64,000 bases of DNA from the sequence record LR535917.1. The stretch is one strand, 5' to 3'. A program made the translations under genes and the position numbers. A model generated the notes under the pieces. It made no database searches, was not told where the DNA came from, and worked only from the letters and a program-made list of their open reading frames with translations. Shown piece after piece: positions 6,579-51,758 of the stretch (positions are counted from its first letter, which is position 1; each line of letters begins with the position of its first letter).

Positions 6579-6998
6579 ACCGGTAAACTTAAGAAAACAC
6601 AAACGCAATTCTTCGTTACTCGCTTTCATCGCAGGTGAAAGACACGGTTCCGACAGAGAACTGGTCTTCACCTCTGGCGGTATACACCGCTAAGCTTTCG
6701 AATGTGGCGACGGAAGGTTACCTCAGCATCGCGACGTTTTCAACGTCGTTGCTGATTAGATTTTGCAGTTTCACGTACAGTCGGGGAAGACTGGCGTGGT
6801 AATCAGAAGCGCCATGAGATGGCTATAGGGTCTTCAAAGAACCTTCTAGCAGACATCGCGGAAGTCTGCGGGCCGGATGTGGTCGTGGGTTCAGGGGCGG
6901 CCGAGCCAACCCGGCGTATCGTTCTTTCGAGCGTGGGGCAGGAGGGTAATTACGAAGTGGGAGAAGTATCATGTAACAGTGAAACAGTCTCTGATCCC

Positions 6999-7718
6999 CT
7001 AGGAGCGGGCGCATACGCCCTAGGCGCAATCCTTGCATTGACGCAAGGTTGGTTTTAAGTTTGTAGCAACATGGTTATTTTAGTGAAATGGGTTGGGTGT
7101 ATCGTCTGTAGCCTGATAGTATGGTGGTGCCACATGGACAGATGTTGGTATCACGCTTATCATTTGCGCAATCGGAGCAGGGACCCGGCTTATGACAGTC
7201 GTGAATAGTGTCAACGCGGCGATGATTGCAACGGGTGCGTTTTGGTGTTCTTAGAAGGGGTTTACTTCGGTAATCTGTGGAGCAAGCCCCCGCGTTTAAC
7301 TGTGGTGCTGATGGGTATTTTCATGTCTCGCGCCACGCCTGCCTTTTGGGGCTTAGTTCGTTCCATGGCAAGACGTAAACCTGGTCGTTTAAAGTTTTGG
7401 GCAGTTGTGGTAATGCACGTATTGCACTGTGGTTGATTCGTGGTGCCTGGGGTTGGATTATCCGCACGAAAGGATGGGACGCGTTGTGAGTGGCGAGATA
7501 TAGGAGAACGGACATGATTGAAGGTATCGTATTAACCGGTAGTGGTTATCGCTGCGGTCGTTTATTTAGCTGCTGCTCTTAAAGAACGTCTGTTCGACTG
7601 GGGTTTTCAGTTCCTTCAGTTTGTTGTGATGGTACTGTACCTCTCCTTTTGTGCAACCTTTATAACGAAGGGGTAATAATCAAATATGCATCATAAAGGT
7701 TGGCGCTTATGGGCTTGG
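6999..7718 (+). CDS. Cluster of about five tiny hydrophobic ORFs (34-68 aa) downstream of sbcC
   Basis: Starts MHHKGWRLW, MIEGIVLTG, MARRKPGRL, MTVVNSVNA, MVILVKWVG; each has a TM-like stretch and they are closely packed or overlapping. Confidence 0.45.
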
Positions 7719-10238
7719 CTAAACTTAACGAAGCCACCTACTGTGTCGTGGAGCCAGAAGGTGTAACGCTTCCACCGGTGGCGTTGTCGGGAGAGTTTTC
7801 TCAATTGCTGGTCGTTTCGCATGAAGCGGAAGTTCATTAACCCTCTGAAGGCATGGATGAGGAACACAAAAATCGACTGGTCAACTTCATTAAATCGTTG
7901 TTTCGTTTAACGGCGTATAAAGCGCTTGGTTTACAAAACTATCCTTTGTTATTGGATGAAGAACTGGTGCCGGATGTGAAGAAAGGTTCGAAGGCACAGC
8001 GTATTATCTTTAACATGACATGCGATCTAACCGACGGGGATTTGGATTATACTTTCCCGGTGCGATTAAAAGACCATGTCATGGATTTAATGAATCGGTA
8101 TATCGAAATGGTGTGGGCATATCCGATGCAGGTTATTCATGCCGTCTCACCCGAAAAAGGATTATTGCGTCGTTACTTTTATGCTGCGATTACCCGCAAA
8201 TTGGAAAAAGAGCAAGCTGAGTTGCTCAAAGAACACCATCATGCCAGATTGATTATCACGTACACTTCCGCTCGTGAACGGTTTCGTCAAATGGAAGGGG
8301 CTATTGCACGTTTAGCGGTCTCCGTTAACAACGTCGTGGTTCGCGAGTTGTTAAACCGACGCGAAGCGAAGCTCGATGCCAAAGAAGCAATCGAACGTTT
8401 CCAAAAAGGCTACGAACATCTGGTATCGGAAATGAACATGATAGAATACCGCAGACAAGCCAATGAGCTGGAACGCGAAACCACCCAACTGCAACAAAGT
8501 GCGCTGAGTCAGAAAATTGAACACATCCGTTCACAACTAGACGGGGCTAACCGTCGACAGCTTGCAACAGCGGAACGGGAATGGCAAGAGGCTGTTGCCG
8601 CAGTAGGTAATGTTGATGTTGCACGTGCCTTTACCGAAGAGTTAGATTCGGCCATGATGTATCTGCGTCAATCGGCGATTTTCCGTAAACTGCAGGAGCT
8701 GGATATCTTCACCACGTCGCGGGATCGTTATGGTGCCAGCCTACGTACGATTCGCGAAATCGTCATGTCGTATTCCAACCATCCCGTTGTCGGTTTGTTG
8801 AAAGACGAAATGGATAGTCTTTTGCGTGACCGCAAAGAGATTGAAGAGGACGTCCGCAGTAAGTCGTTACCTGAAATTGAAAAGGCCATCAACGATAATG
8901 AAGGTTGGAAGAAGCAGCTCTTAGAAACTGCAGAAGTTGATTGTCCACAGTGTAACCACCGTTTCCGTCCTGGGATTCCTGAAAAGCTGCAACGTTGTGA
9001 GAACGTGCTACACGGTTTATACCACGACCGTCAACACTATCGCCTGGGAGCGTTAGAGAAGCGTTTACAGGGTATGGATTTAACCTCTGCGGGTCTATAC
9101 GATGCGTGTAACTGGAATTTACCGTTGTCCATGCATCTGGACCAGTTAAAGACAACAGTGTTCCCGGCTCTGTTTGAAGGTACCCGCATTGATGTGGATA
9201 GCATTCAGAACGCGTTAAGTCTAAAACAAACAATCGACAGCTTAAAACAGGAACTGGCAACGTTCCAACAGAACTGGAAGTTGTCACAGCTACTGGATGA
9301 GGAGTCGCGTCAAGCGTATCTGATGCGCAACCATACCGTGGTTGCCTGGCGTGAGCAAGCTGCCTCTGCTGAAACTGAATGCAACATGTACAATAAAGTT
9401 ATGGAACGTTATGGCGTTCTGCCTTCTGACGAACTGATTAACGAGTTTCAAAGTCGTGCCGTTTCGGTTGATAGTATCCGGAAACGCATTGCTTCGTTGC
9501 AACCGGCTGTAAAACTCATCGATGCTGAGCTTCAGGAATTAAACCGCACAATTGAAGCGAGACCCGGTTTAGATAACGAAATGCGCGTCGTTGATGATGA
9601 AGAAGATCGTGCACGTTTAGAAGTTCGTTTGAAAGAACAACTCGCTTCCAGTTTAAGTGGGGCCATTGAGCACACCGGACGAAAAATCGGTGAGGCAATT
9701 ACGTTAATGTCAGAATCTGATCTGACGTACGTTGTTGGTTGCTATCGACGTTTGCGTAAGTTAATTAATGGTGAGACCTTATTAACTGACGCCACTACCG
9801 AAGTTCGTCGTAAATGGTACGCCAAAGTTTACAACTCCATGGTGGAGCAATTAACCGGAATCACCAAAGAAATCAAAGCTTCTCTGTCTTGTAGTATCTT
9901 CAACATCACTAAAGGTGTCTCCATCGTAGACTCGGTAAACACTAACTACGCGTTAGTTGGGGACGACCGTCTTAAGTTTGAAGTCCTGCGTCGTGGCTTC
10001 CTATCTGTTTTTCTCCCCTTAGCTCCAGCAAAATCAGAATTCCGTGAAGGTGGTTCCTTCACCCTTAAGTCAACCGTTACCATCATCCTCGGTGGCAACG
10101 GCTGCGGTAAAACAAGCCAACGTATCATTTTGAAAGGATTTACCGGCATGGGGTTACATGAAATCGAAACGTTTGATTGACCTTTTGGATATGAACGACT
10201 AATACTTTCTCATTAGAAGGCAAACATGCTCAAGGTCG
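7659..10238 (+). CDS. sbcC: SbcC/Rad50-like SMC ATPase (~836 aa)
   Basis: Re-joined N-terminus MLKVERIILKGFTG...TIILGGNGCGKTSLL (Walker A), central CPQC zinc hook, signature GSKAQ, Walker B/D-loop PLLLDEPSEGMDEEH, H-loop LVVSHE. Confidence 0.93.
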
Positions 10239-20378: not shown

Positions 20379-23300
20379 ACGACAGCCATTTTACACTCCT
20401 TTTCTCTGAGGGCGTCGAGTTCATACTATGACCCGAATATCGGCGTTACCGCTTCACCGGTCTGCATATTCCCCGGTTCTTGATAGTGCGGGTCAGGGAC
20501 CAGGGATGTGGTATAAAAGGGGGCGTGTGCGGGGAACAGCATCCGGTACTTAGTACCGTACGCATGGGTGATGACGTAATCATCACCTAATGTTAATTTC
20601 TTGCCGCCACTCTTGACCGGGTTGGTAATCCACACGCCGCCGTGACAAACATGACCAGTGCGGGCCATGCCCGTAACGGCAGTGGCTTCACCGATGCCAA
20701 TTGCGTGGTAATCGAGTGTAAAGCCACTCTGATATTTCCATTGGCAGTCAACGGGATAGCGATCTTTATTCGCTTCTCGTTCTGCGGCGATCATTTCTTT
20801 TTCCCAGTCGAACTTAATATCGACCGGTGGGAAATATAAATCCCCAATGACGTTATCCTCACCGAGCTTAGCACCAACCGCAACAATGGCTTCCATCAAC
20901 TCGGATTCGCCACGCCAGCCGGCGCGATATTGAAGGTCTAACGTGTTACGAGCAATCGGGTCAACGCGACTGATCGCTTACGTGTAGCCGCCAGTACCGT
21001 CGTACGTCGCATACTGCTCGGATGTGATAAGCGTGACAGAATACGCATCGAATGTCGTATTCTGGTAAGATAACGAATAACGACGACGTGACGCGTTATC
21101 GCCTGGGTTCAACGTTGTTTCCGGTGGAATGCTCGGTAAACGGTATTTTACCGCTAACAACTGAAGACGCAGGATACTCGCCCCACCGTTTGCGTAACAG
21201 AGCATCCAATCGATCAACTAATTGGACGAACCGGAACCAATCGCTGTCGTTAAAGTAAGATAAATCGCGCGTTGCTTCCTAAACTCAACCTCACCCGCCA
21301 ACTCGGTATCGGTCAGGCCAGTCGTCAACGTATAGCTGGTTTGCTTGCTTGTTTTAACGGTGATGTCGTAAACGCCGTTACCATCGCGTCTGACCACGTT
21401 CTGATACCCTGGCGCAAATTCGCTCGGTGGGTTGTCAACGTTAAAGCTGTAGTTAACGCCTGCCCACCAGTTTAGGTTGACGCCCGATTTAAACTTCAAC
21501 CATTTTGCGACATCAGTTTTGTTAACGTCAGGTGCCGGTGCGCCTGGTAATGAACGAATCTGGACGTAATCGTTCTCAGCATCACGGTACAGTTTATCGA
21601 CAATCTGGTGATATTTTACCAGCAGCTGGTACACGTCAATTGCGCCCCACGAATCGCGATGTGGGTTATCCTTGCGCGGCACGTGCGCATGTGCCGGTTG
21701 CGTTTTTCCGTATACCAGTGTCGCGTCCGAAGCAATACCGTTATTCTCCAAAGCACGGTTATTCGCCAGCGTTGACAGTTTCGGCAACAGATTGTTAACG
21801 TAATCTGTCAGCTGCGGTCCAGGCTTCATACCGAACGTGCCGTTGATAGACTGTGCAGCCGCCGGTAAACGTAAAAGCAATTGTGCACCCACGCCTTCAG
21901 ACTCATCGGTACCCACTGCCGACGTTATCGAAGTCAGGCCGGCGTTAACGGTTTGCGAATCGCGTCCAATAAAACGGATAACCCTCGGGTCAACCGTGCG
22001 GGAATCCGGATAAAGGATGAGCTGGTTAGCCCCACTTTGCCATGTAATCGGGTTGTTCGGCAAATACGGCCCGACCGTAGTAGGGTCCAACAGTTTCTTA
22101 CCGTTGAACTCCAATCCAATGGTTACAGTAGCTGTGGAAGTTCCGTAAAACAGTCCATCGCCACCTGACTCGTTACCCTCGGACTCCGGTGGAACAAAGG
22201 TACAAATAAACGGAACAGACTGAATACCGTTACCGTTAAAGTCCTCACGATCGCCGAATTCAGTAGCCAACAAACGGACAGCCATCAGGCCAAGGTCAGC
22301 AACCAACTTGCCCGTAAACTGCTGATCCAATTTCTTGATGAGTGCCGGCGTTGCGGCCTTAGTTTTATCGATGTAAATAGAACTCGTCAGTGGCATGTCG
22401 TTGATGTACGATTTAACGTGGAGCGGGGAAATCGGCAATTGTACATCTGGGACGTTCTGTACGTTCGATAAGCCAAAGCCGAACGCAGCAGAAGTGTGTG
22501 TGTGACCGACGACTGCATACTTGTCCAGCTCAGCTTGTTCGTCAACCGCGGTGCCGAACTGTACTAAACCGAACTCCGTCGTTGTTGCACGCTTAATCAT
22601 CTCTGTGATGGCGTCCGCCTGTCGGATGACCTCACCACCGTCTAATGCCAGAGTGGCAAAACCGTAACGAATAATGTTGATTGAAGCACCAGAGTCGACT
22701 GTCTTCGCGACCTTCTCTTTAATAGTAACCATCCAGTCGGTGTAAGTGATGCCGTTTTCAATGATATCTGTGCCGGGTGCCAGGTTAAATGTGGAGAGAG
22801 GTACTTTGTACTCGCGACCAACGAAATAATCGTTCGCTCCCGCCGCGTCAACATACACGCCAAACTCAGCATCTTCGTGCGTCGCTGGGAATAGCTCCGT
22901 CATCGTCTCAGTTTCTGCCGTGTTTGGATTTTCGTAGATAATGTACTTGCCAGCATCGACGTTGCGGATTTCTACAAAAACCACACCGGTTTCACTGGTG
23001 ATGATGGAACCTATTTTGATATGGGCGTTATCATCCTCGATATGCTCGCCTAATTCACGAAACTCACCTAAACGCGTCCACACAGGCCCGCCTGTACCGT
23101 AAGTAAATCCGAATTCAGCTTGCGTCATGCCCCGTCGACTAGCCTGCGCGTAACGCCAATCGGCATCTATACGTTTTGTACCCGGTGCACCCGTGGACTT
23201 AAACGTCCATTTATCAGCAGCCGGATCGTAGTCCGCTTTCAACATAGGCGTATAGCTGTGGAACATCGGGAATGTGTTGTGGACAAAACGATAATCGGTT

Positions 23301-31300: not shown

Positions 31301-33578
31301 CTTCAATTGCCAAACGGGTACGCGGCTGTGACAACCAGATAAGTCTGGAATTCGCTCCACGATTGTTAGTTGGTCCATACCCCGCTTTACCTGAATAAGT
31401 GGTGTTCGGATCAAACTCCGGTGTAACAATGTGGCACATCTGCGACAGATTCTCGTACGTGGTAGAATCTACTACACGGTAAGGGAATGTTTCTGGTCCT
31501 GTGCAATACCAGCCGTTTAACTCTGTACCAGGCGACGCTTCGGCTTGTGACAGCGTCAACCGATCGGCATGAATCGTGAAAGTGCCAGAAACGTTGTGAT
31601 AACCATTCGCAGCGCCAGCCGGTGCACCGTCGATGATCATCTGCTTCATCTTATCCCAGAACCAAATGGAGAACAGTGCCTTTCCGGCGTTATTTGCGGC
31701 AAGGATAAATTCCGAAGCCACAGTACGCATACATGCTACTTGTGCTAACGTGAGCGGTGTGGCCGTACCAATGCCGATCCCGTTGCTGATCGTTGGTTTC
31801 AGTGTAAAGTAGTAGATATCCAACACGTTAACATTGTTGTAGTCGAGGTTGTTATAGAAGTCAAACAGTGCCAATATCGCTGCGGGGAATGTTACCTGTT
31901 GTCCCGGCCGGCGTGTTTTTCCTCCCGTTATCTCGCCCAACGTAGCATAGTTCAAGCCGGTTAACGTGTGTGGAAGATACAACCCGAACTGAGTACCATC
32001 TACTGACACCAGTGTAGGGTTAGACAGCGTAAGACCAACACCGTAGTTAAGCGCACCCAAGTCGCCAATTTGGCGCAAAGTGTGGGATGGTGCCATGCGT
32101 CCAATGCCGTGTGGAGCAGAAGAACGCGTCCAGGTACCGAGAGATGAGTTGTGTAGCATCACCTGATCACGATGAGCCAGATAAGCTGGGCTGACTGGAT
32201 TAGGAGCCGCGACAAAATCACTCGACGACATTGCGATACCACCACAATAGACGTAGTCCAGCCAACCTTCGGCTGTTTCCACACCAGCAATGACGACCGA
32301 TTCAGTCGGGCCACTAAACGTAGGCAGCTTATAAGTGCTCGAGCCGAAACGCAGGTCAACTTCCTCAGTCACATATACCAGGTAGAATGTCCGGTTCTGA
32401 TGGTTTGTTGGAAATGCTGCGCTGAGGTCAATATACCAGTCTGGATGTTGAATCACGTCCATTACGTACTTCGGTGTACCATTTTCTACCTTGGCGTGAG
32501 TCTCGACGACTCGCGACGAGCCCGTTTTAACATACCCGATATAGAGTTCCGTTTCAGTAACCGCCGCATGTTCCAACAGTTGTTTCACCGCCCCCAATCG
32601 CTTAGCATGTTCGACGTTCAATGGTGCCAGTCTGCCCGTTGCTGCATCCCTTCCCACTTCCACATCATGCTTATTCTCCTGACTATCCAGATAGCCTTTC
32701 GTAGCATCGATCGACAAAGGACCCATCGCTTCTTTACGGAAACGTTTGGACACCATCGCTTTACCGCGACGCTGTGCGTCAGATACGGTATAAAGCAATT
32801 TCCAAAACGCCCCCGATTTGTTTGCCTGAGTAAACGCCGGCAAAGTTTTCAAGCCTTCTCCCAACGATGCCGCTTCACCGTTCTCATCAGCCGTTACCGT
32901 CGCGATTGTTGTAGGATGCACCATCAAGTTCGTTGAGGTCGGTGAGAAAGCGGGCGTTGGAATACCTACCCACTCCATGACATTAAAGGTCGTTTCTACT
33001 CCCGGTGTACCTGGGACGACGAATTTACTTTGCACCACCGTACCTTCCGCCTCGACGTTGTAGAAAAAGCCATCCACCGCCTCCCATGGGGCAACGTGGT
33101 GGTGCACGGTATGTGGTGACGGCAATAACACTTCTGGATTTTCGTCAATGTTAACATCACTTACCGCCGCGACAAATGTAAAGGTGCACGGCACGCCTGC
33201 TGGCAGAGAGTGCTGTTTCCCAGCGTCAGTGAAAAGCCAAGAGCAAATATGCTGGTTAGCTGTTTCGAGCGCTGAAGATCCCGGCTGTGGTAAGATTTGA
33301 ATCTTACTATCCGAAAGATCGGTGGTGATTGGTAGTCCTGTCACATTCGTAAACGTGTAGCTACGACTGTTCAGAACAACTGGTGTGCCGTTGGTCTCCG
33401 CCACGATCGGTGGTGGGAATAAACCCTGAGCGCCCGTGGTAACAACCGGGATTGCACCACGTCCTCTCTCGTTCACCCAATCGTGCGCAATCGTTAACGT
33501 AAGATCATCGCCATCCCACCATAGCGCTATCTGTTAGGTACGGAACATAAGATTGACCTGGATAATATCAGGCTGTTG
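28359..33578 (-). CDS. Large tail fibre protein C (~1727 aa)
   Basis: RBS aggag, MPREDAAQFNG...VIPVEAPFY...LSEGLDYFL N-domain; repeats NAHGYTCGDIGALP, ADFGIEKMDNT, ASTSVTGLAK; ends ...NLMFRT*. Confidence 0.78.
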
Positions 33579-34838
33579 GCGGGTACTGATGAATGATTTC
33601 GGCCATTGCCAAACTCCTTTGATTGGGGCTTCCTTGCCCAGAACCTAACGTAATACGCCGTGTAACGGCGTTCGACGTTAATGTCCCGGTAAGGTCGAAG
33701 CGGAAGGTATCCGCGTAGAAAGCTCCGTCAGGAAAAGCAAAAGCCCGGTTAACTTTACTCAGTTCGTAGTCTGTGCCGCGTTTATACGGGTAGACACCTG
33801 GTTTATTCGCAGCTGCCACCACACCCATGACCACTTCGCGGTTCTTGGTCATTTTCTGATATGCAGTATGTGCAAAAAAACCACCAACGACTTGCGCAGA
33901 GACTTCGATATCAGTAGGAATGGCCGAGTTAGTTACCAGGTCTTCAATTTTCAGCGACGCGATCGCTTGTCGGATACCTTCGACGTTCGCGGACTGAAAC
34001 GTCGGGGCGGACGGGAACGTATCGGGTACGTTTCGAAGATCCTTGAAGTCCACCACACTAATCCCCGCGAGTACGGTAATGATATACTCAAAACCGTAGA
34101 TATCGCCAAGGTCTTTATCGTCCAGAATACCTTTAATTTCTTCCAGCTGTACTGCAGAGCCGGAGTTAATCGCATCTTGTACGTTACCTTCGGCGTTGAT
34201 GTGGGTATTTAAGGCGTCGAGGAAGTCGTTTCTCAGACGAATCAGGGCACGAATCTCCGTCTCCGTCAGGCCATTAACCTGATGAATGTCGAGATTGTCT
34301 GCTGCTCTTAAGTCGCCGATATCGTTGATAGTGGCGTCAATGGCAGTCTGTACACTTTGGTCGTTCCACGCGGCTAACGAAGCCACAATTGCATCGATGC
34401 GTTGCCCCAACGCCGTGTAATTAAGGTTAGCTAATGCTAACGACATTTTCTGGTAATTTTGAGCAACCACGTTAAGCTTTGTTTCATTCAGTGCAGACTG
34501 AAGATCGTTAACCATCTTCTGTAATTGCAACACCAGAGGGTTATCAATTTGCTGTTGGAAGTCTTTGCCCTGATTCTCAAGATCCGTGACGCGCTGATGC
34601 GAAATTGCGTTGGTGTTGTTTATAACCTGAGTTTTAAGACTGTTGATTTGTCCTTGCAGGAGGTAATTCGGGTGTGGGTTATCCGCAGCCGCATGGTTCG
34701 CCAGATTCTGGTTTGCCTGCGAGGTGAGGTTGTTGTTGACGTGAACAGCAGCCTGCACAACACCTCCATACTGTTTATAAACATAGTCCGGCTCGTAAAC
34801 AAGTTACTTAGTACCCGCTTCAGCTTGAACATCGTCGC
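33579..34838 (-). CDS. Tail/baseplate protein D (~400 aa) with C-terminal coiled coil
   Basis: RBS aaggag, MAEIIHQYPLDLTGTLTSNAV...RAFAFPDGAFYAD...KRGTDYEL (same N-domain as A-C); HAAADNPHPNYL motif; ends ...EAGTK*. Confidence 0.7.
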
Positions 34839-34894
34839 TCTTTAATAGATATCGCCATTACGCTTCCTTAAAAAGTAGAACGAGCGGACTATGT
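34781..34894 (-). terminator. Strong hairpin between tail gene D and the Cys-rich peptide genes (split by a junction)
   Basis: Re-joined: acgagccggactatgt-ttatgg-acatagtccgctcgt-tctacttttt, immediately followed by RBS aaggaag and the P1 ATG. Confidence 0.65.
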
Positions 34895-35318
34895 CCATGC
34901 CTCGATGCGGGGGCCTGTCGCCATGTTAGCTTCGACTATCTGGACGCGGTTTCTGACGTGTGCTTTCGTCCAACCCCCAAATCGGTCTGCTGCATTATGG
35001 GCTTTAGAGGCCACTTGCGAACAGCCATGCGAGCAACCGTTAGAGCACGTCCAAGAACATGTCCCGCCGCAATCTAGCCCGCCACACGTCGAAGAACAGC
35101 TACCGATACAAGAAGCAGAACAGCTTCCTGAACAGCTCCAGTTACCGGTACAGCTACTACTGCAACCACCAGAACAACCAGAGCAACCAGAACAGTTACA
35201 GCCGCCGGAGCAGGCCCCGGAGCAGTTTGCGGAACAAGAGCCGCCGCAACCACCTGAATTAATCGGTTATTCAGTTCTTTTAATCCAATTGCCATTTAAT
35301 CCCCCTTAGCGACCTGAA
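34839..35318 (-). CDS. Cys-Xaa3-repeat precursor peptide P1 (130 aa, 21 Cys)
   Basis: MAISIKDVRNRVQIVEANMATGPRIEAQVASKAHNAADRFGGWTKAQLDCGGTCSWTCSNGCSHGCSSCSGSCSASCIGSCSSTCGGNCSGCSGCSGGCSSSCTGNCSGGCGGSCSANCSGACSGGCSGR*; every junction was translated by hand. Confidence 0.9.
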
Positions 35319-35738
35319 TATTGCGAATGTAGTTTTGCACATTCGTGGTGTTCTTTAAAGCGTTTGCATCGATCGTGTCACCACAGTCATAGTGCGAACG
35401 GCCTTGACCTGCGAACAAGTCGGCGTTATTCGTAGCTTCACCCGTAGCAGACCCAGTACACCCGCCAGAACAACTCGAGCAACTAAAAGAGCATGTGCAA
35501 CCCGTACAGCTGCTGCTACAGCCCGATACACAGTTTGCGGAACAAGTCGACCCACAACAGCCGCCAGAGCAGTTACCAGTACACGTTCCGCTACAACCAC
35601 CAGAACATGAAGAGCTGCTAGGACCTGAACAACCACCAGAACACGCGCCGGAGCAGTTTGCGGAGCAGGATTTGCCACTCTACCGTAACGAGACGGTTTC
35701 GAATAGTCTTGAGACTGATCACATAAGCCTCCGTCAGT
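35259..35738 (-). CDS. Cys-Xaa3-repeat precursor peptide P2 (133 aa, 20 Cys)
   Basis: MAIGLKELNNRLNTIDANALKNTTNVQNYIRNKATNNADLFAGQGRSHYDCGGTCSFSCSSCSGGCTGSATGGCGSTCSANCVSGCSSSCTGCSSSCSGGCSGTCTGNCSGGCGKSCSANCSGACSGGCSGPN*; RBS ggggg. Confidence 0.9.
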
Positions 35739-35918
35739 GTCGACACGGTGCCCTGGTTAGCGATATAGTTGTTTGCCTGTGCGGTTGTAATGTAACCTCA
35801 GCTACACCCACCATTACAGTTATAGTGAGAAAGCGGTAAGCCAGCCAGGTTATTTGTGACTCCGAACGTTTTCTGTTATCGATTCCCCGCTCCACGGCTA
35901 CAGCTTCCGCTGCAGGAC
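35679..35918 (-). CDS. Short Cys-Xaa3 precursor peptide P3 (68 aa, 4 Cys)
   Basis: RBS ggagg, GTG start: MISLKTIRNRLVTVEGYITTAQANNYIANQGTVSTTNNLAGLPLSHYNCNGGCSWSCSGSCSRGAGNR*. Confidence 0.85.
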
Positions 35919-36818
35919 GATGCAGCGGGTGGTTGAATGTGGTTTTATACGCAAGATGCAAATCGTTTTTCATTTAATTCTGTGCAATCAGTCTGACTTT
36001 GTCAGCGAGGTGTGCACGCACTGAATCTGGGGAAGATACGGTGTAGTTCTTCTTGTCGGTCAAGAAGCGACCACGAACCTTTGGCCACTCACCAGGAACG
36101 CCGTTAAAGATAACGATGGCCTCTGCAACCATATCACGGATCTTAAACGTATTTTCTATCAAAATCCCTTCACTGAAGAAATACTTACCGTCGACTAACA
36201 CGCCACGAGAGTTACCATTCGGTTTTGCTTCCAGTTCGTCAAACGGTGTAAACATCAGTTCTAAATCGACGCTGTTGTCCAGTACAAAGTAGTAAGGGAA
36301 CGAGCCCAGATAGTCCGGACTCCACCAACGGCGCGCCATATACCCCTCGATATCGATGTATGGTTCGGTGTCGAAATACGTTTCCGTATCGGCAGGTACC
36401 CACACGAACTTATAGCTATACGCCATCATGTCCGCTAAACGGGTGATGCCGAGTTCTTGAATACGTTTGGTGATTTCGAAATCGTCAGTCAGTGCATACC
36501 AGACAGAACGCTTTTTATCTTCCGTCGCCGGATAATCCCCATATCGGGTTTGAACCAGATGTTGCATCCACGGTTTACCTTCTTCTTTCGTTAAATCCAC
36601 CTTCGTTAAGAGGAAACTTACCAGCTTACTCAAATCCGTCAGACGTTTCAAATCGGCCAACGTTACCGAACGACCACGAATCTCAGAAACAGCTTCTGCC
36701 AGTAGCATCGGGTCGTGATAGGCAGCTAAAATTTTGTTCAGGTCGGCGTGTCTTTCGTTATATTTTTAAATATAATCAATGGCGAATAAAGGATCTTCGT
36801 CTACGTTAGCGCCAGGCA
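35919..36818 (-). CDS. Unknown accessory protein of the peptide/radical SAM operon (~295 aa)
   Basis: MKNDLHLAYKTTFNHPLHLSSPDSVRAHL...DPLFAIDYI*; sits between P3 and rSAM1. Confidence 0.75.
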
Positions 36819-37778
36819 GTCGTACAGTTCAGACGAGATCCTGGATTCTACTTGATCTGTCATTGCAGGTTGCTCCAGACAGAAGCTACAGTCTAAGTTA
36901 CACTTAGAAGTTGCGACAACCGACAGAATTGACGGTTTAATCTCTTCACGTTGAAACTCACGAGAAGTATCTTCTCTATCCATGTAATAAGCCCCTCCCG
37001 GCTCACCGCCCGTCCAATGAATCTCACCGATATCCGGATTCTTCTCTAAAATCGAGAGGTTCGGATGAGACTCCTTCAACTCGTTCACGAAGTCTTCAAT
37101 CTTGCGCTGCGCTAACAGCAGCAACGGCAGATGTGATTTACGCATCTTTAAACCGTTGGTGTACATGTGATGACGGAGAAACGGACGTTCCGACTTCTTG
37201 TAGCCGTCAATGGACACAAAGATAAGGTCGAACTGTTTGTTGTCCAGCTCGTACAGCACTTCCAGCGCTTCGTGATTACCACCGTTTACAAAGTTCATAT
37301 CTTCGTACCAGCGTTTATCACCTAACTGGTCACGCGTCATCACACCCCAGGTGTAATAAAACAACAACGACACACCACCTGGACGGTAATGATAGATTGC
37401 TCGGTGCAGCTCGATGAAATACCCGTACATGAAGTTCATGACGTGGTCTGGCGATAACGGTTTCGGCATCATCGCATCAAGCCCACATTCAGAATCGTTC
37501 TGCATGTTAAGGCGTTCGATATTGTCGAGTATTTTCCAGTTAAGCCACAGCACTTCACTGCACGTGTTGCACTCGGTATCGAACATTTTACTGATTGCAT
37601 TACAGCCGACTTCCAATATCTCTGGGGCGTTCTGAATTTGCTCCTGCGTACCGTCGGCAGCAGAAATTACACGGTTGATGTAGTTATACGCATCAACGCC
37701 GATAGAACGCGCCAGGCGCGTGGTGTGTACTGGATTTGCTGTTCGCTATTACTCATTGTTCGCCGCCCGTTTACGCTT
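36819..37778 (-). CDS. Radical SAM enzyme 1 with Twitch-like C-terminus (~304 aa)
   Basis: MTDQVES...VATSKCNLDCSFC (CxxxCxxC), WTGGEP, YTNG, VSIDG, and C-terminal ECNTCSEVLWLNADGT...GCNRL. Confidence 0.88.
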
Positions 37779-39098
37779 CGCTCGTAGCAGTATTCGCAGT
37801 CCAGGTTACATGACAGGTTAGTCACAACCTGATACGTGTCGAAACAAGCGTGGATAAAATCAATCACGTCTGCTACTTTGTTGTTACGCGGATATTTAAA
37901 CGGCTCACCACCGATGATATCGATGATGACTTCAACGTTCGGGATATCTTTATCACGCTGTTCTGCGCATAACTTCTCTGCGGTTTCAAAGGCCGCCAAA
38001 AGAAGTTTAGGCTGCATGTTCAGCGGACGGTCCAGAAGCGTACCGTTCGTGGAGATACTGAACATATACGGGCGATTGAAACCATCGATGGAGACCCCAA
38101 TAGACAGTTTGTCTTTCCAGCGCTCGATAATTTCTTTGGCTTCGTACGACCCTTCACGCGTCGTGGTAAAGATACGATATTTGTCATGGACTTCAGGTGC
38201 CTTTACGCCCAGCTCAGCGATGCCAACACTCTTCAGGTAATTGTAACCGCGTACCGCAATGTCAATTAACGATTTCATGCTGGCGGCATAGTGCGGCAAT
38301 GTATCGATCGTAAACGTCATATGGCGCGGCAGGATATCTTCGTACGTTACGTTACCAGAAATGGTACCACCGCCGGACAGACCCTTCTCAATCCAGTAGT
38401 CCATCACGTCCATCATCTGGTTCGCGATATCCAACGCCGCCATAAAGTTCAGGCCATCCGGGATGATGTGCGTAATCGTGTTACGCGGGTTGGTGTGCGG
38501 GTCGAGACGAACAGAGTCGTCATGTAAGAGTTTGTCACGCCAATCCGGGTCCCAAGTTCGATCAAAGCCGAGACAGGTCATGTGCGTCAACGTACCGCAG
38601 TACGGTTTCAGGCGTTCTTCTGCTACAGCAGAACGGGAAGTTACCGTGGACATGAAACGGTTACAACCGTAAATCTTGGTTTGAATCTCTTCTAACAGCT
38701 TACCACCGTCCAGGCTCACAAACTCACGACCGACCAGTCTACCGCAGCTGTGTTTCATCGGACACCCTAAACAGGTTTCTGGGTAGTTGGTGTACTGCTG
38801 ATACGCTTTACGGTCTTCCAGTGTACCTTCACCGTTTTCGTACGATGCTGCTGCGCAGTACCAATATTCCGCCGCCATCAGCTTCGCAGTAGTCCAACCA
38901 CACTGACGACGCTCGGCGGAACAATAGCACATGGATTTATCATGCAAATCTGATGCGCGAGTCGTACCAGTTTTCTGAACTTCATTCTGGGCTCCGTTTT
39001 GTAATTTTTCTGCTTCAGCACGTTGGCGTACACAACGTTGCGCAGGAAGCGATCGACCAAGTGCAGTTTACGCTTCGTAAAATTGTGAATCAGTATTG
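37719..39098 (-). CDS. Radical SAM/SPASM peptide maturase (CXXX-repeat-target type, ~442 aa)
   Basis: MSNSEQ...VVTNLSCNLDCEYCYE, IIGGEP, STNG, VSIDG; SPASM YCGTLTHMTCLGFDRKIYGCNRF and CLGCPMKHSCGSCAAASYE...QCGWTTAKLMAAEYW; ATG overlaps the rSAM1 stop. Confidence 0.9.
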
Positions 39099-39638
39099 GG
39101 ATTTCATCAGTGAAGTCTTCCCCTGCCACAATTGCGTGCACATTGTACAGCTTGCTTTCTTTCTCAACGCAGTAGACCGGGATCATCACATTCAGCCCGT
39201 ATTTAATCAACAGGCTTTCAAGCAGTCGCTTCTCAAAGCCAGGGTTGCGCTTTTCGATTTCCGCGACAGACTCGTGTCTTTCAGGACTGGCTTCATCAAT
39301 AGAGTGACGTAGCAGTTCGATTTTGTGGCGTGGGTATGTATTGGAGCGTAAGTTACGAATACGCATCCGCGGGAATGACAAGCCCAACGCCACTAAACAC
39401 TGCGGGAGCAGGTGTTCTTCGAAGATTTGACGCTCTGTGTAATAAGCGTCAACCGGGTAGTCCTGATCGAGGTTACCGGCCCACAACAGAGAAATGTTGT
39501 GTTGCTCTTCTTCTTCCAGACATTCGTCCTCCTCAATCAGGCCAAGTTCTAACAACAAACCGAAGTCCAGCATCTGGAAAATCACGCTGGAAATAACGGG
39601 CGCGGATCTCTTCGTTCGTTAAGCTTTTGTCAGTAACA
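38979..39638 (-). CDS. Unknown operon protein (~188 aa)
   Basis: MKSILIHNFTKRKLHLVDRFLR...ECLLLTKA*; start overlaps the end of rSAM2. Confidence 0.7.
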
Positions 39639-40298
39639 GTACGGCCCTGATCCTGCGCACCGATTCGTTCCATGAAATTACCGTGACGATCAATCGGCAG
39701 GGCTTCTTTATCAGACATCCCTTCGATGAGATGGTAATGGAGTAATGCACAAAATCCGGTGCGTTTCAATGTGAAGTTAGCTTCAATCTCCGACATCTCA
39801 TACAGCTTCATGCGTGCCTTCAGATTCCCGCGAATTTCGTCGAGGTCAATCTCCAGCACATTAGCAATAAACTCTTTCCGGTGGTCGAGTTCCAACAGCA
39901 TCTTCTGCACGTCTTCGTAAATGTAACGTGCGGTAGATTCATCGGCTTGAAAGTGACTACCTTCAAACTCGATATAACCATGGCGCTCATCTTCGTAGAG
40001 CCAGTATTCTGGTGCGGTATCTGCCTGAATGTATTGACCGAGGATGGTACGCGACGATGCCAGCAACGCTTTACATTGGGCTACTGTAAACGGACTGTGC
40101 TTAGTATTCAGCGTATCGATTTGGCGTTTGTTATCTGCCATTGCTGAGTGCAACACTTGGTCACGTGCAACAATAGCGCCGAGTGACTCGGACAATGTTT
40201 TTAATCCAGTGTAATCGCGCTTTTCAGCTAACTCACGGAAATAAAAGGTACCTACCTCCCTTCGGGGAGGTAGGGCCTTTATTTTCTTTGCTTACATG
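39519..40298 (-). CDS. Unknown operon protein (~223 aa)
   Basis: RBS gaggagg, MSVTDKSLTNEEIRARYFQRD...SESLGM*; followed by a terminator. Confidence 0.72.
40239..40290. terminator. Bidirectional terminator closing the radical SAM operon and the convergent virion gene
   Basis: aaataaaaggtacctacctccc-ttcg-gggaggtagggcctttattttcttt. Confidence 0.85.
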
Positions 40299-40898
40299 CC
40301 ACCAACGGTGAACTGGACGGATTCGTTTAACAAAACAACTTAGTAGTTTCTAAGAAATAACCTGCCAGCCTTGCAGTTTATACTGTAACGCAGCCAATCG
40401 TTAAAACTGACCTGAGCAACGGCGACAGTGGTGAGAAAATCATCACTGTTATGGTGAAAGAAGGCCACATTAAATACCTTGCCGCCGGTAAAACGGAAGA
40501 TGCGTTTGCATTGTCTGAACTCACCATTTCACGCGAGGCTGACCAGGCAGAATGGGATACCGATGAAGAAGTGCTTGCTTTTGTCAACGCAGATCTAAAA
40601 GAGCTGCATTATACCCGCCTCGATTCATCGAACATCATCGGTGCGAAAGCAGTTACCGCTCGCAACTCCAAACTCACCATCACTGCCACCGCGGAATCCG
40701 CTAACTTTACTGGCGAGACTTCTGCTGACGTTACATTCGGCGCTGTTGCTGACTATTCACCAGCAGATTCTGGAGACACAAAAGACCAACTCGTTGCGCT
40801 GTTTAATGCTGCAAACAGCGGACTGTCTAGTCCGTTAAGAACGATTTAGTATGCACCACAAACCTACTATAAGGAAACAACCATGGCAGTCATCTCTG
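40299..40898 (+). CDS. phiKZ-like virion paralog (~175 aa)
   Basis: RBS taagga, MAVISAKDQLVALFNAAN...RNSKLTITA...HYTRLD...TTNGELDGFV*. Confidence 0.75.
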
Positions 40899-40958
40899 AA
40901 AAATTTCTCGTTTAACAGCCAACTTTACTGCCATATTAAGCCCACTATGTTGTTTTTA

Positions 40959-41498
40959 AACAGGTTTATAATCGCGAATACGATAAATAGACGTTTCATA
41001 GAGTACCTTTCAGTGGTATTCTTTACTGGTGTGGCGCTAAATTGTCCTATGTTGCTTGGCGACTGAACACAACCGGCCGGACGGTAGTCTACAAACTTCT
41101 CCTGCGTCCCTGTGCATGTATAAATCACCAAGTCGTGATTTGCACCCACATCCATTACTGTTACTGACCGCGGCATCATTTGTAGGTTGTCCAGTACCAT
41201 TGTATCTTTAAACATCATCGGTGACTCTAGTTTGCCACCGTCCCACGCTGCTACCCAGTTATTAATACGGTAATAACGCTCACCTGTGGTGGTGTTAACA
41301 TTCCCGTCGATTTTGCCACCTTCGCCGGTATACGGGTTCACATCCGAAAAAGAGTAAGTGGGGCTATCGTTTACGGTTATCGGAGTAGGAACTTCACCGA
41401 TAAACCCGCTGCTGCAGCGAAAGAATGTCATCCCTTTACCCACTCCCCTTACGGGAGTGGGTAAACACTATTTATTTTCTTCTAACGGAACAATCGTA
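40959..41498 (-). CDS. Lipoprotein (~163 aa)
   Basis: MKRLFIVFAIINLLAG-CVQSPS: LAGC lipobox formed after re-joining; ends ...VPLEENK*. Confidence 0.75.
41439..41480. terminator. Bidirectional terminator between convergent genes
   Basis: (tta)cccactccc-cttac-gggagtgggtaa then tatttattttct. Confidence 0.75.
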
Positions 41499-41558
41499 AT
41501 ACGTTTAATGCGCGTAGAGAGCGTTACAGAGCGTTTTAGAGGGTAAATAAAGCCCTTA

Positions 41559-42158
41559 TGGAGCAAGCTAGTTAAAATCTAAGCCACTTTAATCAAAAGT
41601 AATATCATTTATCATTTGATCACCTTCTGGTCACCGACACGTGGTACCGTTAAAGTGGTTAAGCAACAACCCATCGATATTCACTTTATCGAGTGCGATA
41701 TTACCTGGCTGCATGTTGACGTACGCAACCAGCCTGATGATACTCCGTTGCAGAAAGTACACGACTATATTGCCGCGAACCCTAACGAGTTTCCGTTTCT
41801 GTACGCCGAATCGGGCAGTATGCATAAATTCGGTAATGCGTTTGATGCAACAATGCTTCAGTTCTTTATTAATCAAGAGAAACCAAAGGGTGGGGATTGG
41901 CAAACTCGTGCAAACAAACGTTTTGGGCGGATGGTGATTTTAACCAGTTCCCAGCAACAGCGTAGTCTGCGTACCCTGGAAGGTGCTATTCGTTTCCTTA
42001 ATCCGTTACTGCTAATCTCGCTCCAACAGATTCGTAATAATCCTGCCAACTTCGCGTTAAAAGAGTTGATGCCGCAGGAATACATCGCGAAATACGGTTA
42101 TTTGAATATCAAACGTGCGTTCCTGACTGCCCCTTAAGGAGAGAAAATGTTTCATCCG
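41559..42158 (+). CDS. Peptidase M15-family peptidoglycan hydrolase (~171 aa)
   Basis: MFHPNPANFALKELMPQE...LQQIRNRFG...SMHKFGNAFD (H-x6-D)...FP...ITWLHVDVRN (HxD). Confidence 0.78.
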
Positions 42159-50798: not shown

Positions 50799-51758
50799 TA
50801 CGGTACCACTACAATACGCTCCATTGCGGTACTTGAACTCGTTCTGCCTTAACAGGAGAACACGTCCAGTCAGTGGTACAACTGTCCACCTTACCCTGAG
50901 TCGCCGTCGTGGAGTAACCCGGTCGGTCCAATCGATTCGGTTACTGCCCAACAATCTGCATTCTTTGCGGCTATGAATTTTAACACCTTCGCGCGCCTGT
51001 ACAACTACAGTGGGCAGTTTCCGCGCTTTGACGACATTAAATTCTGGACGTCTTACGTTGGAAGCGGTAACACTGAGTTGTATCTCGACGGTGAGTGGCG
51101 CACGGTGACGAAAAACGGTTACGAATACGTGGTGCGCTTGCCGTATTTGTTCGACTACATGTACGGCCAGGATGGCAATGGATATGTACCGGGCTGGGCT
51201 ACTGCACGTAACCAACGGTTTATGTCCGATAACTCGATAATAAACGCTAGCCCGCAGTTCATTTATAACCAGGGGATGAATATGTTCAGTTCCGCCGTTG
51301 GTGCCTGGCATAAATTCATTTACAAAAACCGTATTCTGTTTGGAACAGTAACGCCAGCAGAGTTATTCACTAACACGGAACTGAACGGCCTCGTGGTGTT
51401 TTTAGACACCGGGCCTGGCCCCCAGAAACTGTTATACGGCGACTGGCACGCTGGATACTGGATAGCTGCGGTTAAAGACGGTGAGCGTGTCTTCAACACC
51501 CCTACCGCCCAAGGGTTCCCGGGTGACGCTACATCGTACGAAGACAACGCTGTGGAAAACAACACCACTTACCGTTATAAGACGCCGGGCAACGCCACCA
51601 TTGATGTTAATGCACCGGGAACGCCTCTGGCAACCCTTATTACATTACACTTTGCACAACGGAAGCCACAGGCGCTCGATAGCATCGAAATCTATCGCTG
51701 CGACCGTGGGCGGTATTTGGATTCCAGTAATCGAGCTTATCGAGGATTAATCATGCCT
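50799..51758 (+). CDS. Virion cassette copy 2, type C (~299 aa)
   Basis: MPITLHFAQRKPQALDSIEIYR...GPGPQKLLYGDWHAGY...WHKFIYKN...LELVLP*. Confidence 0.75.

Follow-up and report, generated by a model that had tools for sequence, protein, structure and literature searches.

The 64,000-nt window analyzed here is part of sequence record LR535917.1 of Salmonella phage SPFM20 (Seoulvirus; 100% identity by megablast; window position = record position - 62000). Positions 34839 to 40298 of the window hold a minus-strand operon that encodes three small Cys-rich proteins (P1, P2 and P3), a 295-aa accessory protein, two radical S-adenosylmethionine (SAM) enzymes (rSAM1 and rSAM2) and two further open reading frames (ORFs) of 188 and 223 aa. 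The record is scrambled in 60-nt blocks, and the operon is described here in its native order. Proteins with Cys-Xaa3 (CXXX) repeats, a protein like the accessory protein (gp165 of phage SPN3US), a small rSAM and a SPASM-type rSAM form a conserved cassette, which is embedded in the tail or fiber modules of unrelated phages.

The best explanation for the whole, given about an even chance of being correct, is that P1-P3 are crosslinked, fiber-associated virion proteins rather than a diffusible peptide that is made on ribosomes and modified after translation (RiPP). A preliminary description of this DNA had left two options for the product, a virion component or an effector directed at the host or at competitors. 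The virion component is favored on the sequence data because the module ends fiber-like proteins beside rSAM genes in other phages. Dedicated rSAM maturation of the CXXX proteins is very probable. That these proteins are structural and fiber-associated rather than diffusible is slightly favored, and the case for thioethers as the specific crosslink is evenly balanced.

P1-P3 and the CXXX module of fiber-like proteins

P1 (130 aa, 21 Cys) is located at 34839..35318 (-), where it is spread over eight 60-nt blocks in reversed order. Its start codon base is at window position 34858 and its last base is at 35306; the corresponding coordinates in phage SPFM4 (locus L001) are 9080..8688. P2 (133 aa, 20 Cys) is located at 35259..35738 (-; L001 8677..8276) and is preceded by the ribosome-binding site (RBS) AAGGGGGA. 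P3 (68 aa, exactly 4 Cys) has a GTG start and is located at 35679..35918 (-; L001 8264..8058). By direct inspection, the 20-21 Cys of P1 and P2 mostly have a four-residue spacing. P1 consists of about 48 N-terminal residues followed by a CXXX-repeat module of about 80 residues that ends in CSGGCSGR, and P3 is a short member which shares the N-terminus and the junction of P1 and P2. The conserved N-terminal 16 or so residues contain MAIxLKxxxxRL. The junction motif before the repeat is NAxxLxGx5Y/LxC-x-G-x-CS[W/F]xC, which reads KATNNADLFAGQGRSHYDCGGTCSFSC in P2 and HYNCNGGCSWSCSGSC in P3. All three proteins match phrog_6085 (P1 7e-40, P2 1.8e-41, P3 2.8e-25). They also match the repeat model TIGR04114, which had been named earlier as the target repeat; the scores of 18.4, 16.4 and 13.7 bits for P1, P2 and P3 are narrowly below the cutoff of 20, so the likeness stands and the membership does not. 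The local Pfam copy gave no match to P1-P3. AlphaFold predicts the N-terminal segment of P2 as a helix with low confidence.

The same module is found at the end of much longer proteins. In at least five other lineages of phages or prophages, long tail-fiber-like proteins end in the junction plus CXXX repeat and are encoded beside one or more related rSAM genes; two of these lineages have a homologue of the 295-aa ORF paired with the rSAM. The distant rSAM2 relatives have 34-39% identity. The genome-wide scan used short patterns and was swamped by generic SPASM enzymes, leaving only about 12 informative loci. An rSAM2-like gene adjoins a CXXX-repeat ORF in every relative examined, in unrelated phages and in bacteria.

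The Deferribacter abyssi prophage has a lambda gpJ-like tail-tip gene followed by the genes of a 302-aa fiber-like protein, of a gp165 homologue and of two rSAMs, first a small and then a large one. The 302-aa protein contains fiber-type HxH/RYYTE repeats and then KATNADQLGGQAGSYYRCSDCSWTCSSSC and a CXXX run, with the same junction as P2. Its small rSAM is homologous to rSAM1 over the full length (2e-14). A 213-kb phage contig encodes, after baseplate-wedge and T4 gp13-like genes, a 568-aa fiber-like protein ending in the module and then two rSAMs. On a 35-kb phage contig with an SU10-type adaptor (L114), the gene of a 252-aa CXXX fiber protein is followed by those of a small rSAM-like protein, of a gp165 homologue and of an rSAM. 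PF27846 (tSAM_targ_Cxxx_rpt) is precomputed on both the 568-aa and the 252-aa protein. In clostridial prophages, baseplate and tail-fiber genes are followed by a CXXX protein and then an rSAM.

A profile search of 1.84 billion cluster representatives resulted in 801 module-bearing proteins, 105 of them at E<=1e-10. Among the 146 top matches with a CXXX run, 93 have no more than 12 residues between the end of the repeat and the C-terminus, and carriers shorter than 200 aa make up only 20 of the top 150. The "tail collar fiber" domain (phrog_910) is fused to the module in two proteins, and a collagen-like domain together with the module is also seen. The P1/P2 family phrog_6085 matches the C-termini of fiber-like proteins. 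An alignment of P1/P2 orthologues with two fiber C-termini has 22 invariant columns, of which 21 are Cys. The framing of P1-P3 as a leader plus core RiPP is weakened by this result, since residues 17-50 or so of the supposed leader, as well as the Cys register, are homologous to the C-termini of long fiber-like proteins. Pfam was uninformative on the long CXXX carriers.

Ten proteins of about 1,460-1,800 aa (P0115-P0121, P0126, P0127 and P0137) have up to 10 stretches matching the CXXX profile, and the two that were examined, P0115 and P0118, also carry a Listeria-Bacteroides repeat domain. Four loci of Margulisiibacteriota (Ca. Termititenax; L031-L034) encode proteins of about 500-670 aa with Cys-repeat regions of about 130-210 residues. 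One 399-aa rSAM gene and the gene of an XRE-like regulator adjoin them, and the surroundings show no obvious phage genes.

Radical SAM enzymes

The larger enzyme, rSAM2 (442 aa, SPN3US gp163), is located at 37719..39098 (-; L001 6218..4890) and overlaps rSAM1 by 8 nt. As described earlier it is of the SPASM type, having the CxxxCxxC triad and a C-terminal auxiliary-cluster Cys pattern. The Cys conserved in 15 family members are C23, C27 and C30 together with C280, C288, C298, C342, C345, C351, C354 and C379. The Pfam SPASM model itself did not match rSAM2. TIGR04115, the family named in the preliminary description, is indeed the top family of the 65 NCBIfam families compared (E=3e-36); however, the score of 125.6 bits is far below the cutoff of 350, and membership of rSAM2 is not supported. 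The best stretch covers residues 18-235 only, and more distant relatives of rSAM2 score 113-213 bits. The second family is the PapB ranthipeptide maturase, with 113.6 bits against a cutoff of 340 over positions 12-319 of the 330 in the hidden Markov model.

The closest solved structure to rSAM2 is the SCIFF maturase 5WGG/5WHY (E=3.5e-39), which we take to be CteB. The match covers residues 99-444 of 5WGG, and its seven SPASM Cys line up with rSAM2 column for column. The first 98 or so residues of the solved enzyme are presumably a peptide-recognition domain. Since the match begins at residue 99 of the solved chain, rSAM2 is without this domain, and its SAM motif begins at residue 23, which leaves no space for one. 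A link to thioether-forming enzymes had been proposed before. It holds in that the top relative in the Protein Data Bank (PDB) is a thioether-forming SPASM enzyme with the seven Cys aligned, which makes thioether chemistry the best inference, but it does not extend to the family cutoffs. Anaerobic sulfatase-maturing enzymes, which would have pointed away from a peptide maturase, are a distant second (1.4e-19 against 3.5e-39).

The smaller enzyme, rSAM1 (304 aa, SPN3US gp164), is located at 36819..37778 (-; L001 7125..6211). It contains the motifs CNLDCSFC and GGEP and matches PF04055 (9.8e-16). It is a smaller paralogue of rSAM2, and both map to phrog_1802. In addition to the SAM triad it has three conserved C-terminal Cys (C245, C248 and C274), which are likely to suffice for one auxiliary cluster. 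The similarity of rSAM1 to MoaA, QueE, NrdG and viperin is generic, is limited to the N-terminal part and is far under all of the cutoffs. On the L114 contig, the small rSAM-like protein (6817-7581) keeps GGEP and the C-terminal Cys and is without the CxxxCxxC triad, and may thus serve as a partner that is not catalytic.

Searches with NCBIfam and Pfam profiles found no RiPP recognition element (RRE) or PqqD domain in the eight operon proteins at E<=1, a search that divergent RREs may escape, and no third protein of the CXXX system among them. With PHROG profiles added, no peptidase or exporter was found among the operon ORFs.

The 295-aa accessory protein

The accessory protein (35919..36818, -; L001 8035..7148) belongs to the SPN3US gp165 family (phrog_8030). 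Its AlphaFold (AF2) model ma32aee053e30 has a predicted local distance difference test (pLDDT) score of 86.7 and a predicted template modeling score (pTM) of 0.82. The model has no structural neighbor in PDB or BFVD except the orthologue in Erwinia phage Asesino, and the protein has no match in PDB at the sequence level. From the model, the protein may represent a new fold. A 250-aa ORF in the Deferribacter prophage is homologous to it (BLASTP 1e-9; phrog_8030 1.9e-11), and the 247-aa ORF of L114 is a gp165 homologue (hhalign, 96.7%). A 224-aa ORF in locus L029 was considered as a relative and was rejected, having no detectable relation.

Operon organization and conservation

The native order of transcription, all on the minus strand, is gp167 (400 aa), P1, P2, P3, the 295-aa protein, rSAM1, rSAM2, the 188-aa ORF and the 223-aa ORF. 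From P1 to the 223-aa ORF the genes are separated by 10-22 nt or overlap by 8-38 nt. Every start has a purine-rich, RBS-like stretch before it. For most genes this stretch is clear; it is weak in the case of rSAM2 and the 188-aa ORF, the starts of which overlap the preceding gene. A terminator hairpin with a 10-bp stem (7 GC pairs) is located 18 nt past the last stop, at window 40251-40274. The hairpin scores as a terminator on both strands and separates the convergent genes of the 223-aa ORF (-) and of a homologue of the abundant virion protein gp160 (+). The limits of the operon region, 34839 and 40298, are exact edges of 60-nt blocks.

The 188-aa ORF (38979..39638, -; L001 4927..4361; SPN3US gp162, phrog_7988) overlaps rSAM2 by 38 nt and is specific to this clade. 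The 223-aa ORF (39519..40298, -; L001 4385..3714; SPN3US gp161, phrog_8169) encodes a DUF4376 protein (PF14301, 1.4e-9) with a weak match to the tail-protein family phrog_2837; a PDB search with it gave no match. Upstream, a 400-aa fiber-like virion protein corresponding to SPN3US gp167 is encoded at 33579..34838 (-), 65 nt before P1. It matches phrog_2163 and, weakly, tail-fiber families. No terminator-like site was found between its gene and P1, and the operon is directly downstream of the tail and baseplate genes gp167-170 on the same strand.

An intact, collinear operon is also present in SPN3US, in many Seoulvirus genomes and in jumbo phages of Erwinia, Cronobacter and Proteus. Synteny across jumbo phages, proposed earlier as a check, is borne out by 18 IMG/VR jumbo-phage loci that keep the operon; the number of Cys there is 21 in every P1 and 20-23 in P2. 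The conservation of the operon and the constant Cys counts in these loci are far beyond chance. P3 is kept in L004-L014 and L020 (the SPN3US and phiEaH2 groups) and is absent in L015-L019 and L021. Genes of the rSAM2 type occur in 63 of 50,697 phage records, all from this jumbo clade except for one fecal phage. Two metagenomic relatives, L005 (4542-5453) and L020 (4543-5454), have an extra 303-aa paralogue of rSAM1 between P1 and P2.

P1, P2 and P3 are unannotated in the records of SPN3US (JN641803) and SPFM4. The "hypothetical proteins" annotated over P2 and P3 are Val/Ala-rich ORFs in the wrong frame: SPN3US gp166 (L003 7076-7411) and SPFM4_00153 (L001 8179-8532), corresponding to about 35259-35918 in the window. 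One deposited annotation names the two rSAMs AlbA and MoaA.

In SPN3US, gp167 was found in virions and was not flagged as a head protein, and gp168-170 are baseplate or fiber candidates (PMC5694885). The published virion proteomics does not list gp161-166. Because gp166 is a wrong-frame ORF over P2 and because P1-P3 are unannotated, their absence from the proteomic data is uninformative; presumably they were outside of the database that was searched.

Block-reversed sequence record

The window is built of 60-nt blocks starting at 39+60k, each in its native orientation and in exactly reversed order. Sister phages including SPFM4 align to it by megablast as at least 40 pieces of about 60 nt each with about 99.5% identity. 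Over the whole window, an exact match in SPFM4 exists for 1064 of the 1066 blocks. From one block to the next the matching position shifts by -60 in 1061 cases, and SPFM4 contains none of the 1066 60-mers that span a block junction. The only two blocks that differ from SPFM4 are 21339-21398 and 50859-50918, which presumably contain true single-nucleotide polymorphisms or indels between SPFM20 and SPFM4. The pattern is that expected from a 60-column sequence file in which the lines were reversed without reverse-complementing. Reordering of window 33099-41978 results in 8880 nt with no mismatch to SPFM4, and on this sequence the gene list, sizes, strand, packing, single terminator and coordinates given in the preliminary description are all correct.

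Since the block length of 60 is divisible by 3, the scrambling leaves reading frames intact; this results in long ORFs in the corrupted record, which were annotated in the scrambled state. For the same reason ORF length is uninformative on scrambling, and an ORF-length test did not discriminate. In the unreordered window CxxxCxxC comes at the C-terminal end of both rSAM ORFs, after GGEP, TNG and SIDG in reversed order, and the Pfam match to either ORF spans no more than about 20 residues. The ORFs are chimeric, and the starts of the N-terminal "leaders" do not share a frame with the Cys-rich stretches. Natural permutation, programmed frameshifting and stop-codon recoding were considered for these odd ORFs and were rejected, as the block mapping identifies an artifact of the record.

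Eleven deposited records (SPFM1, 5, 6, 7, 8, 9, 10, 12, 14, 15 and 20) are fragmented in the same way against intact relatives. In Table 1 of PMC6614189, the part of that paper drawn on here, SPFM12, 14, 15 and 20 have 289-305 coding sequences and the intact records have 249-261. As far as that table goes, the raised counts indicate that these genomes were evidently annotated on scrambled sequence, and the accessory-gene and selection analyses of the same paper may be affected. Public protein collections hold chimeric "radical SAM" proteins (P0081-P0084) from scrambled records, including SPFM8, 9 and 15, whose alignment to the real enzyme is confined to short stretches (6-22% query coverage). 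The 11 block-scrambled SPFM genomes, annotated as such, are a data-quality problem that seeds chimeric "proteins" in public databases.

Proposed function and alternative explanations

A late structural-module operon would encode three small proteins together with a dedicated maturation cassette. The SPASM enzyme would recognize the junction segment, rather than a removable leader, and would turn the thiols of the Cys ladder into thioether crosslinks, while the small rSAM and the accessory protein would contribute a further modification or serve in substrate presentation. The product would be a rigid, covalent and redox-independent module at the end of a fiber. A redox-independent module is sensible because the particles assemble in the reducing cytoplasm, where disulfides cannot form. 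P1-P3 would then be separately encoded "mini fiber tips" whose N-terminal helices dock onto the tail or fiber apparatus encoded just upstream (gp167-gp170), with gp167 as a possible attachment partner. More tentatively, and with somewhat less than an even chance, there may be a widespread and so far unrecognized class of phage fiber modules in which a C-terminal CXXX Cys ladder is covalently stapled by phage rSAM/SPASM enzymes and a novel-fold accessory protein, and which is split off as three small docking proteins in SPN3US-type phages.

Several points weigh against a crosslinked virion protein. Both the virion location of P1-P3 and the formation of crosslinks are inferred. The absence of gp161-165 from SPN3US virions is as expected of enzymes and gives no positive support. 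Neither rSAM2 nor P1-P3 reaches the curated cutoff of TIGR04115 or TIGR04114, respectively. The long CXXX carriers are called fiber proteins mostly from their context and sequence character, and only some of them have PHROG tail-fiber matches. The unmodified core of P2 has no structure in AlphaFold (pLDDT about 30-40), so the "ladder" fold is conjecture. The N-terminal motif shared by P1-P3 could equally well be a leader. Finally, short CXXX peptides of 72-94 aa are encoded together with a fused 720-aa rSAM in two bacterial loci (L041 and L042), where neighbors look transporter-like from the size and position of their genes only. Because of these short-peptide loci, the CXXX superfamily spans both fiber-like and diffusible-looking products.

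The alternative that survives best is a true RiPP pathway, which is considered unlikely. The N-terminal residues, about 48 in number, would be leaders removed by a host or other protease, and the crosslinked cores would be freed at lysis to act against competing bacteria or phages or against the host. The layout is indeed leader-like, with a conserved N-terminal motif followed by a Cys-rich core, the nearest enzyme families of rSAM2 are RiPP maturases, and L041 and L042 look like such pathways. However, profile searches and the structure search with gp165 revealed no peptidase, exporter, immunity gene or RRE in the operon, and a typical RiPP core is far smaller than the present ones, which have about 80 residues and an invariant 20-21 Cys. 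From about residue 17 the "leader" is homologous to internal fiber sequence of long proteins that have no leader, and the closest relatives of rSAM2 are all in phage tail modules.

An intracellular role outside of the virion is more doubtful still. P1-P3 would bind metal or Fe-S clusters, buffer redox or act as an anti-defense factor, tuned by the rSAMs, which would fit their very high Cys density and a virion location that is only proposed. It fits poorly with an operon that is embedded among tail and fiber genes and co-oriented with them, and with the fusion of the module to fiber shafts in other phages. Dedicated SPASM maturases also point to covalent modification over plain metal binding.

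It is very improbable that the rSAMs act on a non-peptide substrate (a nucleotide, a cofactor or a sulfatase-type target) and that their Cys-rich neighbors are incidental. The generic similarity of rSAM1 to MoaA, QueE, NrdG and viperin and the deposited names AlbA and MoaA would allow it, but rSAM2-like genes are beside CXXX-repeat ORFs in all relatives examined and rSAM2 matches peptide maturases best, with the sulfatase-maturing enzymes far lower (1.4e-19 against 3.5e-39). That the operon is an artifact of the scrambled record has a negligible probability: the window as deposited is corrupted, but SPFM4, SPN3US and dozens of independent phage genomes and metagenomic contigs have the same operon, intact and collinear.

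Significance and comparison with known systems

Crosslinked virion proteins would mean that phages of several morphotypes use RiPP-type radical SAM chemistry to build or harden their adsorption structures. Virion structural proteins crosslinked post-translationally by radical SAM enzymes would be a first, the CXXX-repeat rSAM family would gain a biological role, and covalent stapling that does not depend on redox state could guide the design of stable fibers or receptor-binding proteins. SPN3US, an established model for genetics and proteomics, makes the proposal directly testable. The searchable literature contained no experimental characterization of the CXXX-repeat rSAM family, no description of rSAM-installed crosslinks on any virion protein and nothing tying CXXX repeats or rSAM enzymes to phage fibers, including SPN3US and the jumbo phages. 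Aeromonas phage 332-Vera (Chimalliviridae) has eight rSAM genes in a baseplate and tail-fiber cluster, which were called "highly unusual" and left unexplained (PMC12390700). These may be part of the same theme, and crosslinked fibers would explain such recurring rSAM genes inside tail-fiber clusters. The genes of the operon themselves have been in GenBank since the SPN3US deposition; the fiber-module reading, which is drawn from sequence comparison, appears to be new.

The operon resembles the CXXX-repeat rSAM system (TIGR04115/TIGR04114/PF27846) in that Gly/Ser/Thr-rich Cys-Xaa3 repeats are encoded beside a SPASM rSAM which has no N-terminal extension. It differs in that the phage lineage has, in addition, a gp165-like protein and a second, small rSAM and is located in tail modules, and in that the phage repeats are often the C-terminal domain of fiber-like proteins. 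The score of rSAM2 also sets it apart (125.6 against 350 bits).

PapB acts on repeated Cys-X3-Asp motifs, and P1-P3 show a similar in-line Cys periodicity. The rSAM and SPASM domains of rSAM2 align over their full length with PapB and with the SCIFF maturase 5WGG, although rSAM2 is without the 98 or so N-terminal residues of the latter. Unlike the substrates of PapB, the phage repeats have no acidic acceptors, form ladders in which about 80 residues hold 20-21 Cys, and probably belong to structural proteins.

Stabilized virion modules include the HxH iron-binding needle of T4-type fibers and the isopeptide chainmail of HK97. The proposed module would likewise add stability to an extended virion structure, which is an analogy of function only, and the Deferribacter fiber has HxH-type repeats, like those of the T4-type needle, upstream of its CXXX module. 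The needle and the chainmail are metal-mediated or self-catalyzed, whereas the phage module described here would need dedicated rSAM enzymes.

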